DNA of 64,000 bases from Parasitella parasitica NRRL 2501 (lineage: Eukaryota; Fungi; Mucoromycota): assembly GCA_025201805.1 (NCBI GenBank), contig MU619286.1:145970-209969 (forward strand), read 5' to 3'. This document shows positions 16,223-61,029 of this stretch, piece by piece. The position numbers and the translations under genes were made by a program. The notes beneath the pieces were generated by a model, which had not been told where the DNA came from, made no database searches, and saw only the letters and a list, made by a program, of their open reading frames with translations. Numbering within the stretch: position 1 is the stretch's first letter; every line of letters begins with the position of its first letter.

Positions 16223-16432
16223 NNNNNNNNNNNNNNNNNNNNNNNNNNNNNNNNNNNNNNNNNNNNNNNNNNNNNNNNNNNNNNNNNNNNNNNNNNNNNN
16301 NNNNNNNNNNNNNNNNNNNNNNNNNNNNNNNNNNNNNNNNNNNNNNNNNNNNNNNNNNNNNNNNNNNNNNNNNNNNNNNNNNNNNNNNNNNNNNNNNNNN
16401 NNNNNNNNNNNNNNNNNNNNNNNNNNNNNNNN
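16223..16432. other. Assembly gap (210 N) in the H3/H4 divergent promoter
   Basis: Run of N. Confidence 1.
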
Positions 16433-29526: not shown

Positions 29527-29741
29527 NNNNNNNNNNNNNNNNNNNNNNNNNNNNNNNNNNNNNNNNNNNNNNNNNNNNNNNNNNNNNNNNNNNNNNNNNN
29601 NNNNNNNNNNNNNNNNNNNNNNNNNNNNNNNNNNNNNNNNNNNNNNNNNNNNNNNNNNNNNNNNNNNNNNNNNNNNNNNNNNNNNNNNNNNNNNNNNNNN
29701 NNNNNNNNNNNNNNNNNNNNNNNNNNNNNNNNNNNNNNNNN
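29527..29741. other. Assembly gap (215 N)
   Basis: Run of N, next to a (CA)n microsatellite at about 29787-29819. Confidence 1.
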
Positions 29742-53016: not shown

Positions 53017-55028
53017 TTATGTCGATTTTTTACTTTTTCTCGAAAGGGTATGACTATCATATGAAAGCCATGAGAGAGGGGGGGTGGCAAGTCTTCGATG
53101 GGTGGTTTTAGCAGCAAATAATATCGATGATTCCGCCTCACTCACGGTTTCAACGGCAATGTTCTGTTTATAAAGTAAAATAATATATATAAGTAAAAGG
53201 GATCAAACTTTAAGTAAAATTATGTTTACCTTCAACTGCAATAGCTTTATGATGATTTTTGGAAGCAATATGTATTGTTCAATATTCTCATGCAAACTGA
53301 TTTCACTCAACTTGGTCATACGGTACATATTTGGGGAGGGCATGTCCATGCAGTAGGTTGTTAACCGAGTTCCTTCACTTCTTATTCCGCAGACAATAGG
53401 ATTTCCAAGGCGGTTATTTACCAAGTCATTGTATGTTGATCGCATTTGGCGGCCTAATTTAACCAAATCTGATTCTACTGCTGAGTTACACTTCGTTGGC
53501 TTGAACTCAGAGACAAGTAATACGCATTTAACATTGATAATTCGGGAGAAAAGTGTGAAATCTGGTTTGTACGTTTTTGATCCTGAACTTGTTAGCTCTG
53601 CGTTGGCCCTATAAATAGCATTGAGATAAGCTTGAGCTATTCACTTTCAAAAAAAAAAAAAAAAAGTACCATTGGATTTCAAATCTTTCGTCAGAATTGA
53701 ATATTGATTGTAATATTGGGGACAGTATTTGTTGTACGTATGTATCTTCAACAGTTGATAAAGGCGATCTTGATACAAACATAGGAAGACTAAACATATA
53801 TGATACAGCAAGTATTAATATTCATAAATATTGATGTTCCAGTTTTTGATTACGTTTGGACAAGTGTGTGTGCTGTATGAATATCAACTATATTTTTACT
53901 TGTGATAGCGTCAGACAATAAACCTGAAGCTTTTGTGATGGCACTGATCCAGTCTGTGGGAGGGTCCTTTAAAAGATAAATTTATTAGTTCATATTCAAA
54001 GTTGTTCTATTGATTTCTTACATTGCTGATTTCTGTACACCATACAGACGCCTTATCAGGCATTTCGGGTAGATTTTTATTGCACTTCAATTCAGCCATG
54101 ATTAATTTATGCATGCCATGGAGGAAATACTTGGTAATTGAGTTGTTGGGTTCATTTGAGAATAAGTATATATCATTCATCGCCCTAAGGGTATTAAAAT
54201 ATGCAATCTGTATTCAGCCAAAGTACTTTTTTCTTTCTTTTTTACATACATTATCTTGATATCTGAGAGGGTACTAGGATTGGCTTGGGATCGCAAGGTG
54301 TTATGCTTAAATGCATAGCATTCTTTGGAAATATTATATATTTTATCAACGATCCAGTCATTGTTATCCCCTTCTTCATTATCCTCCTCTTCTTCTTCGG
54401 CCTCTTCATCATTGTAGGATAAAGTGTGCTCATTGGTTCGGAGTGGCTGGTGGTTCATACTAAGGTCTGAAGGGAACTTCTCTTGGCTACTATCTGAGGT
54501 GCTTTCATCTGAGCTAAAATCACCTATATTACCTTCAAGTATATCCTGCACCTGGTCCCCAACTGTGTCCAATGAAGTGTCAATGATGTTGATGGCCTTC
54601 ATTTTACCTTTGTTTGCCAATGTACTGGCACCGTGATCCACCTCGGCCTTTTCAGCTATATCCTTCTTCGATGATGCAACTTGGATAAATTCACTTTTAA
54701 AAGATTCATTGGCAGCATATCTATAACACTTCTTCGCATAAGTTTTCACTTCAGTAGGGATACCAACAACATGCGAGAGTTGGTAAAAGTTGTCTAAAAC
54801 TTTGTTATACAGGTCTTCAACGTCGTATCTCAGTAATCTCTTGACATTAATCGAGTCCACCAATTCAGTTGGGGCTGTCCACGATTTTACAGGAGCAACA
54901 ATCAAGCCTTTGACTATGCCTGGGATTTTAACGGGGAGGACATACATAGCATTCTTGTTTGGTGCACGGGGTTTTCTTATATCCTTAAAAGTGTCTGCTC
55001 CTTTTTTAGAGCTTCTCGTCTGAGACAT
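53017..55028 (-). CDS. Putative PD-(D/E)xK restriction-endonuclease-fold protein, 6 exons, apparently intact
   Basis: Five GT-AG introns join an uninterrupted frame from MSQTRSSKK to KKST*; motifs EDTYV..ILSPIL, W|AN, YKPDF, VSEFKP, DLVKLG..M, VCGI, MYRM. Confidence 0.75.
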
Positions 55029-56422
55029 ACTATTAAGATCTTTCACTTTTAAAGTATGGTAAACAACAGCAGATGTTTTTTTTTGTTTTTGGCAATCAAA
55101 AAAAGAATACTTTTTGTTCCAAGTGACTTATCAAGGAGTTGCTAAAAGAGAGAGAGAATGATAAACGACTGCGCTTATTGTTTCGATTTCTTCATGAGAG
55201 CTACTAAACACTTTAAATATGTGATTCTAGTTGGTATTGTTACTCTAACTCAGAAATAACTCAAAAACTGTGATTGAACTGAAATCTAAACTATGGTAGC
55301 TCCTTTCCTTTGCAGACATCAGAAAAAGATACCACAACGGTTTAAAATCAATTTTATTTGCATCATGGTATGGATACATGGTCTCCTGGTAAAAAATAAA
55401 GAAAACGATAACTAACCTATACTCTCCCAAGAGCGATACCTATATCTTGAGGATATTTGGATATTTGAACCTAATATTCCTGGAAAAGTTCCTTTTTCAA
55501 CTTATAGTACAGAGTAATTTAGGATTTTAAAGAAGACTCCAATACAAAAATCAGTATTTGTAATGATCGAATGACTTCAGTGTCCTCATCAACACAGTAT
55601 AAATCTTCAAGATAAAAAATTCTATTATTTTATAGCCATTGAGTTAACGCATGAAAAATCAACTCTTTTTAGCCCCCGTTTCACCATTTGATGGTGAGAT
55701 TTCCGTTATGTCCATGTGCTCATCAAGATACCCAAATAGATACATCAATTTTATCGTCATCAATTTTGCAGTATTGATAAACAGACTATTAAATTGCACA
55801 AATGAACACAATAGCAGATGACGTTGGGATAAAATTGATTGAATTTTATAAGAATAAGTAAAACTACTGAAATAAACACAACGAGGCAATACATTTACTT
55901 TTTTGATTCAAAGAAATCTGAAAGAGAGGGTATAGTCTTGATTTTTATATTATGCATGTGATTTTGGTCTATTGTTACATTTAGCGGTGAGAATACCTCT
56001 TTTACAAGTACAAAGAAGAATGTCTATTTTTGACATTCTCAAATATAGGATACACCTGCAATCTAAATACAGTGGTCGAGTTCACAGTGCATTGTGTTAG
56101 TGTTTTATTCAAAACGTTTGTTTAGAAAGTACTTTTAATGGGTCTAAGATTCTTTTTTATTGCCCTTCTAGAGCAAAATCAAGTATTGTAAATACAAAGA
56201 ATGTCTGAATTGTGGTAGATTGTATTTTGATTAGAAGTGCAATCACTTACGATCGCTTTTAATGCAGTATCATGTAAAAAAAAAAATATAATATTTTATT
56301 CCTTCGTTATTATTAGAGCCCTGAAGTTAGAAATCATGTATAAACCTTCACATTTTCGGTTTATTTTATTAAAAAAACAATACATATCAACCACTATTTT
56401 GCTTGTTAATAATGTATCTTCT

Positions 56423-59400
56423 ATGTCATTTGCTTTTAATGGTCGCAAAAGACGCCTTATTGCTATTAATGATGAAGAAGAACAAATGTCAGATCAGTCG
56501 TGAGTCTTGCGGACAAATCAGCACTTTAACAGCCAATTTACTTTCATGATGCATGCACTCAACAACAATCATAACCAAGAAGTTGGGGATAACTCTCACC
56601 ACAGTTCCCTGTTAAATGCAACGTCTTTTCAACTACATCAGCAAAATCGACGACTAAAGACAAGACAGCAACGAGACATAATCAAACATTGAAAACAAGC
56701 CAGCGATTCCTGAAATTGCAGCTACAGCTTGCTTTGGCAGGCTAGTGATACGGTAGATTAATAAATTAAGAATTTGGACCAACAAAGTTAAAAACTGGTT
56801 GCAAACACGACATCCCACCCAAAACTAGCAACTTTTCTTTTCTTAGCTTTATTGTACGCCTGCCGCAAAACATGAAGTTCAAAAAAAGACAGTTAGAATA
56901 TTATGTTGCAGGCTCAACTATCATCAATCCTCCAGCTTCGTTTCTAAAGCCATCCAGTGGGCTTCGAAGCAAAGTTCAAGCATCCAAAGAGAAAACGGAT
57001 TACTGGAATGCCCTGCAGTTGCAATTTCGAATCTGCCATCTACGCTCAATTGTACATTGCAGAAAAAAAAATGGAGACTATGATGAGCTATATATCTCTT
57101 TATTAAAAAGTACTAGAATACCTAAAGGCGTACTGCAAGAAGCAGAAGCAAAAATCAAGAGTCCAGGAAAAATCACAACGATGTTAAGCACTGTGTATAC
57201 ACAGAATAAAAAGGCTGGAAGTCCGAAGAAGAATTCCAGTCTCTTTTGGATTTACCAGAAAAGGATGATGGTAGCAATGATGATAAATACAGTGAAAATA
57301 GCGAAGATGAAGACAGTGATGGAGCGACTCAAGATGACGCTGAGCAATTTCGTGCATGCTCAATTTCTTTGAGTCAAGTGCTCAGAGACGACTTGCCAAA
57401 CGACATCAGGTCGTTATTCGTCAATACAATCGGTGCTACCATGGAGCAAGTATCTAATTATACCTCTGACTTCAGCAAGCAGGTTCTCAAAGTCGCTCTG
57501 TTGTTTGCTGAGTATACATTTGAATCTAATGACGGCAACATTGAAATTGTCTACGATGGTGGAAACAGCATTGCGTCAATACTGCCAGAATGATATTTAG
57601 AGAAAGACATCACTGTACCAAAGCCATTAGATTCCAGCTCTCTCCAGAATAACGAGTTCAATGCTCACTATCAATTGCTGTTTCTACAACCCCCACTTGA
57701 AACAATTGCACTCAACTTACTATGATCAAGTGGGTATTGAAGAGTCTATCCTTGAAAAGTCGCCTCTCCACAAGGCAATTGTAAACGTTTTGGGCCGTGA
57801 TGAAGCCAAACCACATCAAAATCTGTCCTCGCACGTTGTGAAGATGGCTCGCCAACATTATTACACGAATCTTCGTATTATGTGGTCCGAAAATACTATT
57901 GTCAACAAGCTACCTAGAAAGCTCTTGAACTTCTTGCTGTTGATCCATTTATCTTCCGATCAAGGCCATGCTATCAAGGCGAAAAAACTGAAAGAGAATC
58001 GGCTAAGCTTCGAAAAAACCATAAAGGCAAACAGAGAGTGACAAATTTCAGTATCCCAATGGCAGAAATTTCAGTGCTGAACAAGACAAGAAATGGAAGA
58101 CGAAAGCTGTTTTCTGATGAAAGAAATTAAAAGCCGAGTACGAAGAAAAAGGGAAGCATGAGGCGGCAGACATGTGCCAGATGAGATTTGATATATGAGC
58201 AAGTACTGTATAGAGAGGTAGGGGTCGTCTGGTTTTTAAAGGAAGACAGTGTCATAACTCGGAAGAATGTATATAGCAAGCGGAAAGGGACAGAAATCCA
58301 AGACATCAGCAGCAGCAGAAGCAAGGAAAACGTCAAGAAAGCAATACTGATGATAGAGAGAACTATGAGAAAGAGAAAAATACCAATTTATCTAGAAAAA
58401 GAATTCATCAGTTAGTCAACATTGCAAGATCAGCGTTGTTTGCCACGCAAGATATCACAGACGCATACCTTCAAGATCAGGATGAACAGATCACCACACA
58501 AGGATCTGCAACAATCATCAAAATTACTAGCTTTATTCGACCATACATACCATCAAGCGAGACTTATCATCTCCTTCCATGCCAACTCAAGTTCATCTTG
58601 ATGGCAAACCAAGTACTGCGCTCTATCGGCTATGAAGGCCAAGTTGCTAAATTTATTCCAATAGTCAGACCCACTAGTTTGCATGCACTTCTTATTGACA
58701 CAACGACCCTGTATGCACTTTTTTGCTCGAGAAAACTTTCAAAACGGATGTTTCTTCGAGACTTTCAAGACAATTACGTAAAGCATAAAGACGTCAACGC
58801 TAAAAAAGATGCCATCTTTAGCAGTTTCTTTAACATTGACAAACTGAAAAGCGTGACATCAAGCAATGGTATGGAGTTTGTAAATAGAATACACATCTTA
58901 CCAGGATCGAAGACTGTCAGATTGTATGACAGCATTGGCCATTTCAAGTCTAGTCGCAGGAACCCAGAAACAAAAAGCAAGCTGAGCCATCATACAGATG
59001 ACGACCAGTTACGAGCTATGAAGGCTCAAAAGAAGGAGCTCGATAAGTCGCTCAGGGATCGCACAAAAGAATTGTATCAGTTTCTTCAAGACAACGACAG
59101 TGTTCGTGGTCTCAAGAGAGCTTGGAGAACCAACTTTGAAAAACAAAAACAATGTTATGAGAAAGTCGAAGATGCCCAAGAAAGAGACAAAAATTCTGAT
59201 CTTACAAAGACTTGGAAGGCTAAAGTCGAAGAAAAAAAGACGAGCGCTATGAGAATGTGGAAGCAGTAAAGTTAAGAAAGAGAGGAGTAATGGTGGCATT
59301 CGAGATGCAAAGGAGAGGCTTCATTCACTGCGGCGAGAGATTTATAAATATGGAAAACCTTTAGTGGATAATTTGAAAAATCTAATACCATTTAAGCCCT

Positions 59401-60525
59401 TCACTGTGGGTAACAATGGATGCTGTAGAAAGGTAGAGGAATGCAAGCTGGATGAAGACATGGATCTGACAACAGCCGTGTTCAGTGGCACGGATAATGG
59501 CATTATAAAGACTACTGAGACAGTGTTTTTTGATATCGATCGTTTCGCATCACACTTGAAGCTGTACAATAGGTTTCAGATCTTGGGTATGTAACTCAAT
59601 GCCGTTGAACACATATGTATATTGTTACAGAAACTGACTCTATATGTGTGTATGTGTGTGCCTACTATAGAGGATACCAAAGATGCAGACAACGCTGATG
59701 GTTCAAATACAGATGAGACTGATATTTTTGAACATTTGACTCTACCTCGCGCTCTCAATTTGGGCTTCAAGCAAATCAATCTGCTTGGCTATTTTTACAA
59801 ATTCGTTGACTCGAAAAAAGAAAACCACAGAAGACGAGCACAGAGTTTTGGAGATGGAAAAGGATCTTGGAAAAAATAGTCTTTATCAATGCTCAACATC
59901 TGATGGTTTGGAGCAAGCCCATTCGCATCACACTAATGCGCGCGCATTGTTGCGCTCATTCTATTACAATCAATCCATAACAAAAAGAAAAAAATGGTTG
60001 GAACTCTCTTACAGAAAAGGCTCTGACAGACTAGCAGCTTACGAGAGAAAAAGTTCTGGTGCAAAGAAGCCGATCATGTTTGTCGGTGATCGTGGACACG
60101 GATTCGGCTCTCGCATCAAGGGACACAGACAATTTGATGGGTTCTGGAAACAGCAGCGACACGGCCGCTATACACCAACGCTGATAACAAGTGAACCTAA
60201 TAAGTCGCAAACGTGTGCTTTCTGCTTCCACAAGCTTTTTCATCCTGTGGCTGCTCTCAATGGCAAAATACAACAAACAGCTGGTTCATTTCTTTGCTTA
60301 AATCCCGAATGCCCCAATGCTTTCAAGACAATGTGCCGCGACCAAGTCTCAGCACTTGCCATTGGTCTTGCTGGTCTTGGTTGCCTTTTGTTTGGAGTAA
60401 CTTTCCCCTGCTTCGACCCAAACCCCACCACTGCTAAGCACACACAATTCAACAATTTAGTCCTATCTTTTTTGTACAGAAAACAGATACTGGGATCGCC
60501 TTTCGATGGAGGCAATACTCTTTGA
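56423..60525 (+). pseudogene. Giant Fanzor/TnpB-like gene (about 4.1 kb), frameshifted
   Basis: Chain of + strand ORF pieces ending in RuvC-I VFSGTDNG (D 59493), intron 59587-59670, LRSFYY, IMFVGDRGHGFGSRIKG, RuvC-II ITSEPNKSQTCAFC (E 60193), CLNPEC, RuvC-III CRDQVSALAI (D 60340). The link to the N-terminal pieces is inferred from collinearity. Confidence 0.78.
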
Positions 60526-60956
60526 AGATTAGTAAACAAATATAAAACGTGGGGTAACTCAATATTAATCGAGCGCTGCATCTTTGATTTTGACCTTTTG
60601 ATACTATTGGGTAAGTGACATTGCGATATAAGTTGTTTATAAAAAGTAACCAAACTCATCTGTTTCTTCTTTCTTATAATACTTTAGACGCGATTTGTAG
60701 TCGTGTGCAGATAAATATGTTTTAGAGTAGATTTATAAGGAAGTATGTAGAATGTTATATATGAGATAAAAGATACCTTTATTATTTTAAGATACAATTG
60801 ATATTTATATACTAATTAAAATTGTTACACACAAAGTCTGTGAGCAACTGACAAGCAACTGACATTGTTTGTGAAGCGAAATCAAATGAAGCAACGTGCT
60901 TGGTAATTATAAAAGTGTAAATAAACGTCTCACTTAATAAAAAGTGATTAAAAAAT

Positions 60957-61029
60957 TGCCTGTTAACAGAATTGAACTGCTGACCTTCTGCTTACTAGGC
61001 AGACGCTCTGCCAACTGAGCCAAACAGGC
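60957..61029 (-). tRNA. tRNA-Thr (anticodon AGT)
   Basis: GCCTGTT TG GCTC AGTTGGCA GAGC G TCTGC CTAGTAA GCAGA AGGTC AGCAG TTCAATT CTGTT AACAGGC A: complete 73-nt cloverleaf, followed by a T6 Pol III terminator. Confidence 0.96.

Follow-up and report, generated by a model that had tools for sequence, protein, structure and literature searches.

We analysed a window of 64,000 nucleotides (nt) from Parasitella parasitica NRRL 2501 (contig MU619286.1, positions 145,970 to 209,969 of the forward strand; the coordinates below are those of the window unless a contig is named). Within it, 56271-60673 on the plus strand is a decayed copy of a repeat of about 4.5 kb, recognised by its homology to other copies in the genome. 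A sequence-only reading had described 56423-60640, a span slightly smaller than this repeat unit, as a giant, frameshifted Fanzor-like gene. Taken as a whole, the best explanation, and one that we consider likely, is that this is an inactivated copy of a transposon whose gene encodes a Fanzor1 protein of about 1,185 amino acids (aa). The features of the copy are:

56264-56270 (+): GCAGTAT, a flank-side 7-nt direct repeat (ACAGTAT in young copies), adjoining the 5' end of the element
56271-60673 (+): the decayed copy of the repeat
56271-56871 (+): 5' leader, doubtful as coding sequence, including MSFAFNG at 56423
56872-58217 (+): exon of the N-terminal block, about 461 codons in the family, broken here
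57028-57069 (+): Cys/His stretch RICHLRSIVHCRKK, not a conserved metal site
58218-58276 (+): intron 1, GTAGGG...TATATAG here; 58 nt in sister copies
58277-59586 (+): exon in which the core begins, with its REC/WED region and RuvC-I; family length, 438 codons
59484-59501 (+): SGTDNG, RuvC-I aspartate motif, with the aspartate at 59493-59495
59587-59670 (+): intron 2, GTATGT..CTGAC..CTATAG; 84 nt here, 76 nt in sister copies
59671-60525 (+): final exon, of 286 codons in the family, with RuvC-II, the zinc ribbon (TNB), RuvC-III, and the stop codon
60184-60216 (+): ITSEPNKSQTC, RuvC-II glutamate, a decayed TNEynTSQTC, relocated beside the zinc ribbon
60214-60312 (+): zinc ribbon CxxC (CAFC, 60214-60225) ... 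CxxxxC (CLNPEC, 60295-60312)
60337-60363 (+): RDQVSALAI, RuvC-III aspartate motif, which aligns with NRDMLS of the Spizellomyces punctatus Fanzor SpuFz
60526-60673 (+): 3' untranslated region, which stops at the truncated right end; by analogy, the expected site of a guide (omega) RNA

Between 56423 and 60525, the plus strand holds collinear stop-free pieces whose frame changes from one to the next (56770-57369, 57210-57590, 57631-58038, 58277-59266, 59253-59591, 59595-59876, and 59740-60522). These pieces are far above chance, because the last of them (59740-60522), in an exhaustive HMMER search of 1.84 billion representatives, matched 384 proteins (E ≤ 1e-3), and because a protein search found the same piece at 104 places in the organism's own genome. 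Thus, the coding fragments that had been noticed from the letters alone are real, and the motifs that were quoted with them (SGTDNG, ITSEPNKSQTC, the zinc ribbon, RDQVSALAI, and MSFAFNG) are all present on the plus strand at the positions listed above. Most of the 384 matches are themselves fragments of decayed copies. The long relatives are:

713 aa: P0024, from a metagenome
735 aa: Lichtheimia
705, 975, and 1107 aa: Halteromyces
937 and 1129 aa: Mucor hiemalis
757 aa: P. parasitica
931-1626 aa: Entomortierella

The Fanzor1-like part of the gene is its last 724 codons (58277-60525 without one intron). The sequence features of the gene indicate clusters that bear PF07282 and come from Mucoromycota and giant viruses (score of 0.98). 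When a profile of 67 family sequences (alignment A1) was run with hmmsearch against PDB, the best match was the Spizellomyces Fanzor (8gkh, E = 1.7e-5, in one stretch of 220 residues), followed by Cas12f (E = 0.004). The alignment to 8gkh pairs ..TNEynTSQTC.. with LLDEYKTSSVC and ..RDklSalaI.. with NRDMLS. Searches of PDB with single sequences gave only chance-level matches or a weak match to Cas12f and did not reach 8gkh. We also built an AlphaFold model of P0024, a short intact relative (mean predicted local distance difference test score, pLDDT, of 73.4). The top six Foldseek matches of this model are all Fanzor1 (E of 1.7e-6 to 1.4e-4), and Cas12 types and TnpB come after them. The structural match to SpuFz covers residues 107-685 of the model; residues 18-222 and 391-426 of P0024 map to the exon at 58277-59586. 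In these comparisons the core has the Fanzor1 fold (REC, WED, split RuvC, and TNB) and is closer to Fanzor1 than to Fanzor2, TnpB, or Cas12. Together, the profile and the model support placing the core in the TnpB/Fanzor/Cas12 RuvC family, closest to Fanzor1.

The catalytic and zinc-binding positions to which the sequence-only reading had pointed (all three RuvC acidic residues and a zinc ribbon) are well conserved across the family. The three acidic residues (D/E/D) and the four cysteine columns of the zinc ribbon are kept in 79-98% of relatives. The RuvC-I aspartate is present in 23 of 29 family sequences, with the flanking glycines in 26/29 and 27/29, and in the P0024 model it stands at the end of a beta strand that leads to a hairpin and a helix. 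The RuvC-II glutamate (58 of 59 sequences) aligns with the glutamate of LLDEYKTSSVC in SpuFz, and a young copy (L017) still encodes TNEHNTSQTC. The zinc-ribbon cysteine columns are filled in 57/58, 56/58, 51/58, and 53/57 sequences. For RuvC-III, the arginine is found in 53 of 56 and the aspartate in 52 of 56. A relocated RuvC-II glutamate defines Fanzors and their TnpB ancestors (PMC10530073), and the glutamate of this family is in the relocated position. As we read the alignment, the family strand mFxGDRGxG has a glycine where canonical TnpB has the glutamate. The published Fanzor motif is D-X(125,275)-[TS]-[TS]-X-X-[C4 zinc finger]-X(5,50)-RD (Bao and Jurka, 2013, PMC3627910). P0024 matches it throughout (D396, T600-S601, C604/C607/C640/C645, and R657-D658, with spacings of 204 and 12). 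The window copy has the D, KSQTC (in which the first T/S has decayed to K), CxxC...CxxxxC, and the RD.

To understand the changes of frame, we aligned eight copies and compared the phase of each copy's open pieces. Three phase blocks (about 56504-58217, 58277-59586, and 59671-60522) hold in 8 of 8 copies, with the same stop and restart columns. Because the frame changes at 58218-58276 and 59587-59670 recur in all eight copies and have GT..AG ends, they are introns and not damage, and the length of each intron is what carries the frame across it. So, the description of the gene as frameshifted is right for this copy, which insertions, deletions, and stops have broken, but not for these two changes, which are introns common to the eight copies.

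The signals of intron 1 (GTAGGG...CATAAC...TATGTAG) are a canonical donor, branch point, and acceptor. Removing the 58 nt of this intron from the sister copy L028 leaves a single open frame (...QVLCRE/QAERDRN..., where the slash marks the joint). A Joint Genome Institute gene model from P. parasitica (P0173) splices at this site (..VLYRE/QQKQ..), and the donor stands directly before a stop at the equivalent place in the relatives L030 and P0178, which are described below. For intron 2, the family signals are GTATGT...CTGAT...CTATAG, and a stop and a phase change are present in all copies. This intron can also be seen in X1, the sole public sequencing run in which the element sequence was found, as short contigs (whether they are RNA or DNA is a guess): one X1 contig skips exactly 59587-59670 (84 nt), with GT..AG ends. 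Counted from 56872, the family-phase codons come to 461 + 438 + 286, or about 1,185 aa, which bears out the earlier estimate that the ancestral protein exceeded 1100 aa.

P0024 maps only to 58379-60480, which at first suggested that a separate gene lies upstream. P0024 comes from a metagenome contig of 4,819 bp (ERZ27297397 k141_641928, or L030), which appears to be an intact relative of the whole gene. Upstream of the core and on the same strand, this contig has an open reading frame (ORF) of 487 aa (P0169) that is homologous to 57046-57921 of the window (E = 9e-16) and that stops three codons past a GTAAAC donor. Without the GT..AG stretch at 2156-2355 of the contig (200 nt), this ORF and the core are in frame and give 1,235 codons with no stop. 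(Intron 2 has no counterpart in L030, which means that lineages differ in their introns.) In M. hiemalis (locus L031), the exons follow one another as in the window family, and all three are intact, for a total of 1,129 aa. Gene models that run from the block into the core exist for P. parasitica, Rhizopus microsporus, M. fragilis, M. circinelloides, M. hiemalis, and Halteromyces. Overall, an in-frame join of block and core is possible in three lineages at about 25-35% identity. (Each exon was searched and folded on its own, and the join was examined by script for its reading frame.) The block also keeps one frame in sister copies (L027, with 355 aa open, and L026). Its homologues include P0178, P0169, and the N-termini of P0077, P0168, P0159, and P0106, and its profile matches the Entomortierella protein P0153, which is annotated beside the core protein P0152. 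Judging by these homologues, block and core are kept together from Mucorales to Mortierellales, and we think that they probably form a single protein in intact copies. In particular, L030, L031, and the gene models join the block to the core where a separate gene might have been found.

The very long N-terminus of the sequence-only reading is therefore largely upheld, as the block belongs to the same gene, but the first ~450 nt of the proposed gene (56423-56871) are probably leader. The conserved start of the relatives (MRRRKRQLDVY.. or MKFKKRQLE..) aligns to MKFKKRQ at 56872 and not to 56423. Also, the leader has an in-frame TGA within GTGAGT (56499-56504), both in the window copy and in L017, the sole young copy that is readable there, and in-phase stops at 56743, 56746, and 56767.

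The main alternative is an element with two genes. The block (56872-58254) would then be a separate protein of ~460-490 aa that terminates at the stop codon close behind the presumed donor of intron 1, an accessory or partner instead of an N-terminal extension, and the core would be translated alone from a start after 58277. We consider this unlikely, although several observations fit it. Intron-blind calling gives separate ORFs of 476-487 aa (P0178, with 25 member sequences, and P0169) and of 713 aa (P0024), P0024 has a methionine of its own ~17 codons past the position equivalent to the acceptor, and the annotation of Entomortierella places the block-like P0153 next to the core protein P0152. 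Furthermore, X1 shows no joint for intron 1. Against the two-gene alternative, a donor followed by a stop and a frame-restoring acceptor recur in three lineages (the window family, L030, and M. hiemalis) at 25-35% identity, and each in-frame join would arise by chance alone one time in three. The gap between the two ORFs has canonical GT, branch-point, and AG signals, and the eukaryotic gene models of six species join both parts.

If block and core are a single protein, then what is the block? We modelled it on the intact relative P0178 (with an alignment of 25 sequences) and not on the window copy; P0178 is 44% identical to the open 355-aa piece of L027. The model is helical throughout, except for one beta hairpin and a disordered acidic linker, and 156 residues have pLDDT ≥ 90. 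The block is confidently predicted to be a real folded domain. The acidic linker corresponds to the acidic tract that had been noticed in the translation of the window copy. The best Foldseek match of the model had E = 0.41, comparison of its shape with the Atlas gave TM scores of at most 0.27, and Pfam has no family for the block. Nor is the block a duplicate of the REC part of the core (hhalign probability of 0.05). One feature of the earlier description did not survive: the Cys/His motif RICHLRSIVHCRKK is conserved neither in sister copies nor in homologues. Sister copies have RICLLRSIVHCRKK and RICLLASIIHCRKK at this place (RICLLRS.. and RICLLAS..), with leucine for the histidine after the first cysteine, and homologues have neither cysteine nor histidine at these columns; we reject a zinc site.

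The window copy is an old, inactivated fossil. It carries 4 in-phase stops and at least 12 insertions or deletions of a length not divisible by three, it lacks the 3' tip, and its tail has ~94% identity to young copies. In the leader and the block, the lesions are 1- or 2-nt deletions after 56683 and 58247 (the latter within intron 1), a 34-nt deletion after 57233, a stop at 57591, a 1-nt insertion at 57690, 1-nt deletions after 57983 and 58119, and a 2-nt deletion after 58192. Farther downstream, there are a 6-nt deletion after 58306, a 2-nt insertion at 59232-59233, a 1-nt deletion after 59297, an 8-nt insertion at 59643-59650, and an 8-nt deletion after 59781 that shifts the frame. At the edges, the copy is short of ~125 bp after 56303 and of the final 30 nt of its 3' tip; X1 reads run beyond 60673 into exactly the missing 30-mer. 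The left terminus is probably retained: the 5' junction reads gcagtat/catgtaaaaaaaaaaa, or gcagtat/catgtaaaa at 56264-56279, as aligned by eye (the MAFFT alignment is ambiguous here).

Other copies show what the complete element looks like. A 6-kb DNA query gave 83 matches in the organism's own genome (32.8 Mb in 450 contigs), with homology limited to 56304-60673, and other copies extend past both edges of the window copy's homology, by 78 nt on the 5' side and by GGAATTTAGCTTGATATACCGTTACAGTAT on the 3' side. Besides the further copies that we read (L017, L026, L027, and L028), four young copies have readable ends (L013-L016), with 98-99.4% mutual identity (in the unmasked last 330 nt). On the left, their flank ends in ...ACAGTAT and the element starts with CATAACTAAAAAAAATATTTTTAG..., so that the 5' junction reads ..ACAGTAT/CATAACTAAAAAAAA..; on the right, the element ends with ...GGAATTTAGCTTGATATACCGTTACAGTAT before the flank, and the 3' tip reads ..GTTACAGTAT/flank. 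The ends of the element are CATAACTAAAA... and ...CCGTTACAGTAT. If up to 3 mismatches are allowed, the genome has 28 occurrences of the 30-nt right end, and 11 of these are exact. ACAGTAT is found at both junctions in all copies read, and the DNA outside is unrelated; we regard ACAGTAT at the left junction as a candidate target or adjacent motif for the element. Five copies with young-looking ends, in four of which the last 330 nt were read, have interiors of 3.3-4.0 kb that consist of N:

C55: 128451-132470
C40: 137584-141368
C25: 61618-65592
C9: 383160-387124
C52: 108738-112077

The "open frames" of 1,160-1,458 aa that six-frame searches report are artefacts of such interiors, as N stretches are open in several frames and on both strands.

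The element lacks the hallmarks of several known classes of DNA transposon. We found no terminal inverted repeats in the window copy or in one young copy, and no hairpins at the element ends. No piece and no long homologue has a Pfam match above threshold, to TnpA (Y1 or serine recombinase) or otherwise, and one gene fills the element. So, the TnpA gene and subterminal hairpins of the IS200/IS605 or IS607 type are absent, as are the features of transposons with terminal inverted repeats and variable target duplications (Mariner, hAT, MuDR, and others) and of Helitrons (5'-TC...CTRR-3' and a 3' hairpin). Nevertheless, the element has spread. At least 4 loci with different flanks (C83, C81, C70, and C17) share one internal deletion, in which the equivalents of window positions 57012 and 60314 are joined, which implies that a non-autonomous derivative was mobilised. 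As the element and its deleted derivative have spread with no recognisable transposase, they probably move in trans. We think it likely that this is a multi-copy DNA transposon of P. parasitica with a single gene and no terminal inverted repeats.

A second alternative is that the block itself provides the missing mobility function, as a new recombinase or a DNA-binding targeting module fused to the Fanzor nuclease, so that one protein both moves and guards the element. This would account for a deleted derivative at several loci from an element with no other long conserved frame and no inverted repeats, and for a block that is conserved with the core from Mucorales to Mortierellales and whose fold matches no known fold, but it is very improbable, because the alignment has no conserved catalytic-looking residues (its conserved columns are mostly hydrophobic or structural), because the model is almost all helices, unlike DDE, tyrosine, serine, or HUH enzymes, and because TnpB-only or Fanzor-only elements that are mobilised in trans are common (PMC3627910, PMC10530073).

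Returning to a transposon with a single Fanzor1 gene that moves in trans, we propose the following mechanism. The intact gene would have at least 3 exons and encode a protein of about 1,185 aa. Residues of about 1-460 would form an all-helical domain, with a fold unlike known ones and an acidic linker, and residues of about 460-1,185 would form a complete Fanzor1-type core, with REC/WED, a split RuvC carrying D, the relocated E, and D, and a C4 zinc ribbon. By homology with Fanzor1 proteins that have been solved and characterised biochemically, the most likely role of the intact protein is to bind an RNA that is transcribed from the 3' end of the element and, in this RNA-bound state, to cut matching DNA beside a short motif. 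Cutting would help the element to persist or spread, and transposition would be carried out in trans by an enzyme that the element does not encode. We infer RNA guidance and cleavage from those proteins, and a role for ACAGTAT and any role of the N-terminal domain are likewise inferred.

The 3' region, where the guide RNA would be expected, is 182 nt long in young copies. Directly after the stop codon there is a good splice donor (60523-60535; TGAAG/GTTAGT here and GTAAGT in several copies; alignment A4, columns 128-142). The 3' untranslated region might thus hold an intron; in X1, no GT..AG joint is seen after the stop codon. The summed contig depth of X1 is 4-20 times higher at 56419-56714 and 60267-60562 than in the rest of the element. 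These peaks overlap the parts that are kept by the deletion derivatives, so they are not readable as abundant RNA: they may come from extra DNA copies of the deleted derivatives, or they may come from an abundant RNA.

Several results, in addition to the missing X1 joint for intron 1, weigh against our explanation. First, the pieces of the window copy have no match to Pfam PF07282, and homologues score 18.2-20.1 bits, which is under the gathering threshold of 26.3 bits in every member tested. Scores below the threshold imply that the clade is divergent and do not contradict the profile and fold results. Second, intron-blind gene callers and some annotations (such as Entomortierella GJJ78181 beside GJJ78180) split off the block. 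Third, a full open gene is unreadable in the own-genome copies C55, C40, C25, C9, and C52, whose interiors are N. Fourth, no transposase was found in the element. Finally, three tests, all of them weak, gave no sign of a guide RNA: Rfam matched only a neighbouring tRNA and no omega RNA, the 3' region has no excess folding energy (z of −0.16 and +1.02), and RNAalifold found no covariation in this region among 15 copies.

Some observations concern the surroundings of the element and its more distant kin. The guanine-plus-cytosine content is ~0.40 across 56500-60500 and ~0.30 on both sides. A tRNA-Thr (AGT) gene lies at 60957-61029 on the minus strand, ~285 bp 3' of the truncated right end (ARAGORN; Rfam, 68.3 bits). 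Upstream of the element, at 54177-55046, the minus strand has an uninterrupted frame (289 aa) that includes an acidic tract. The window itself contains runs of N at 16223-16432 and 29527-29741. Elsewhere in the genome there are more distant subfamilies of the Fanzor clade, in which the C-terminal piece matches at only 38-46% identity:

C29: 218500-219237 (-)
C166: 7-588
C207: 21542-22078
C48: 196732-197145
C21: 244952-245272
C46: 157959-158279

To our knowledge, Fanzors are the only eukaryotic RNA-guided DNA nucleases. They are under development as compact genome editors. Published Fanzors have about 500-800 aa, and their growth has been ascribed to insertions in REC, RuvC, and the zinc finger. 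Most Fanzor1 proteins have 600-700 aa (PMC11423790), and the largest reported Fanzors reach about 800 aa via internal insertions (PMC10711439). A catalogue from 2013 covers Fanzor1 families of Mucor, Rhizopus, and Phycomyces, with ten in M. circinelloides (PMC3627910), and describes no large N-terminal domain. Thus, Fanzor1 in Mucorales is already known, and the large N-terminal domain (in a protein of about 1,130-1,240 aa, nearly double the common size) appears to be the new part; we found no description of a ~460-aa N-terminal domain on its own exon in the Fanzor papers that we read (Repbase and supplementary tables were left unchecked). The suggestion of a poorly described Mucorales clade is therefore apt for the domain, but the Fanzor1 families were catalogued in 2013 and the clade is Mucoromycota-wide.

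We lean towards a broader reading: that one clade of Fanzor1 extends across Mucoromycota (Mucor, Parasitella, Rhizopus, Halteromyces, Lichtheimia, and Entomortierella) and conserves an N-terminal helical domain, 450-490 aa long, which has an exon to itself and no known fold, that these are the largest Fanzors so far (about 1,130-1,240 aa, the size of Cas12a), that the P. parasitica carrier was recently active and always lies beside ACAGTAT, and that the domain adds a function that no studied Fanzor has. If so, the extra domain could serve in the handling of chromatin or of target sites, or it could recruit the mobilising machinery. The addition of such an N-terminal domain, well folded and retained beside the core in two subphyla, would continue in eukaryotes the path that led from TnpB to large Cas12, and it would offer a concrete way to study how Fanzors serve their transposons. 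These ideas should be readily testable, as the same genome has copies with near-identical ends and the host's own PpFz1 has already been purified and solved.

How does this family compare with known systems? The bacterial TnpB of IS200/IS605 (ISDra2; PDB 8h1j) and Cas12f have about 400 aa, unlike the window family. They also differ from the window family in having the canonical glutamate, hairpin ends, a partner TnpA, and no introns. As elements, MCi-2 and MCi-5 of M. circinelloides are similar: they are unclassified, with no recognisable inverted repeats and no matching transposase (PMC3627910), and their short constant flanking 'duplication' (ATTTAT; ATAATTNNNN) resembles ACAGTAT. (The likeness is drawn from the published description of these two elements, and the window family may be one of the ten MCi families.) Among proteins of solved structure, SpuFz1 from S. 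punctatus (PDB 8gkh and 9ceu-9cez) has only 12-18% identity to the window family, which is set apart from it by the motifs GTDNG / TNEynTSQTC / RDxxSAxAI, by the extra ~460-aa N-terminal helical domain on its own exon, and by a length of ~1,185 aa. PpFz1, from P. parasitica itself (PDB 9cf0 and 9cf1), is a solved Fanzor1 of a different clade: phmmer searches of PDB with the last piece of the window copy (E up to 10) and with P0024 and P0090 (E up to 1) did not return it. The special feature of PpFz1 is an insertion of ~100 aa inside RuvC that binds cyclophilin (PMC11423790), and not an N-terminal domain.

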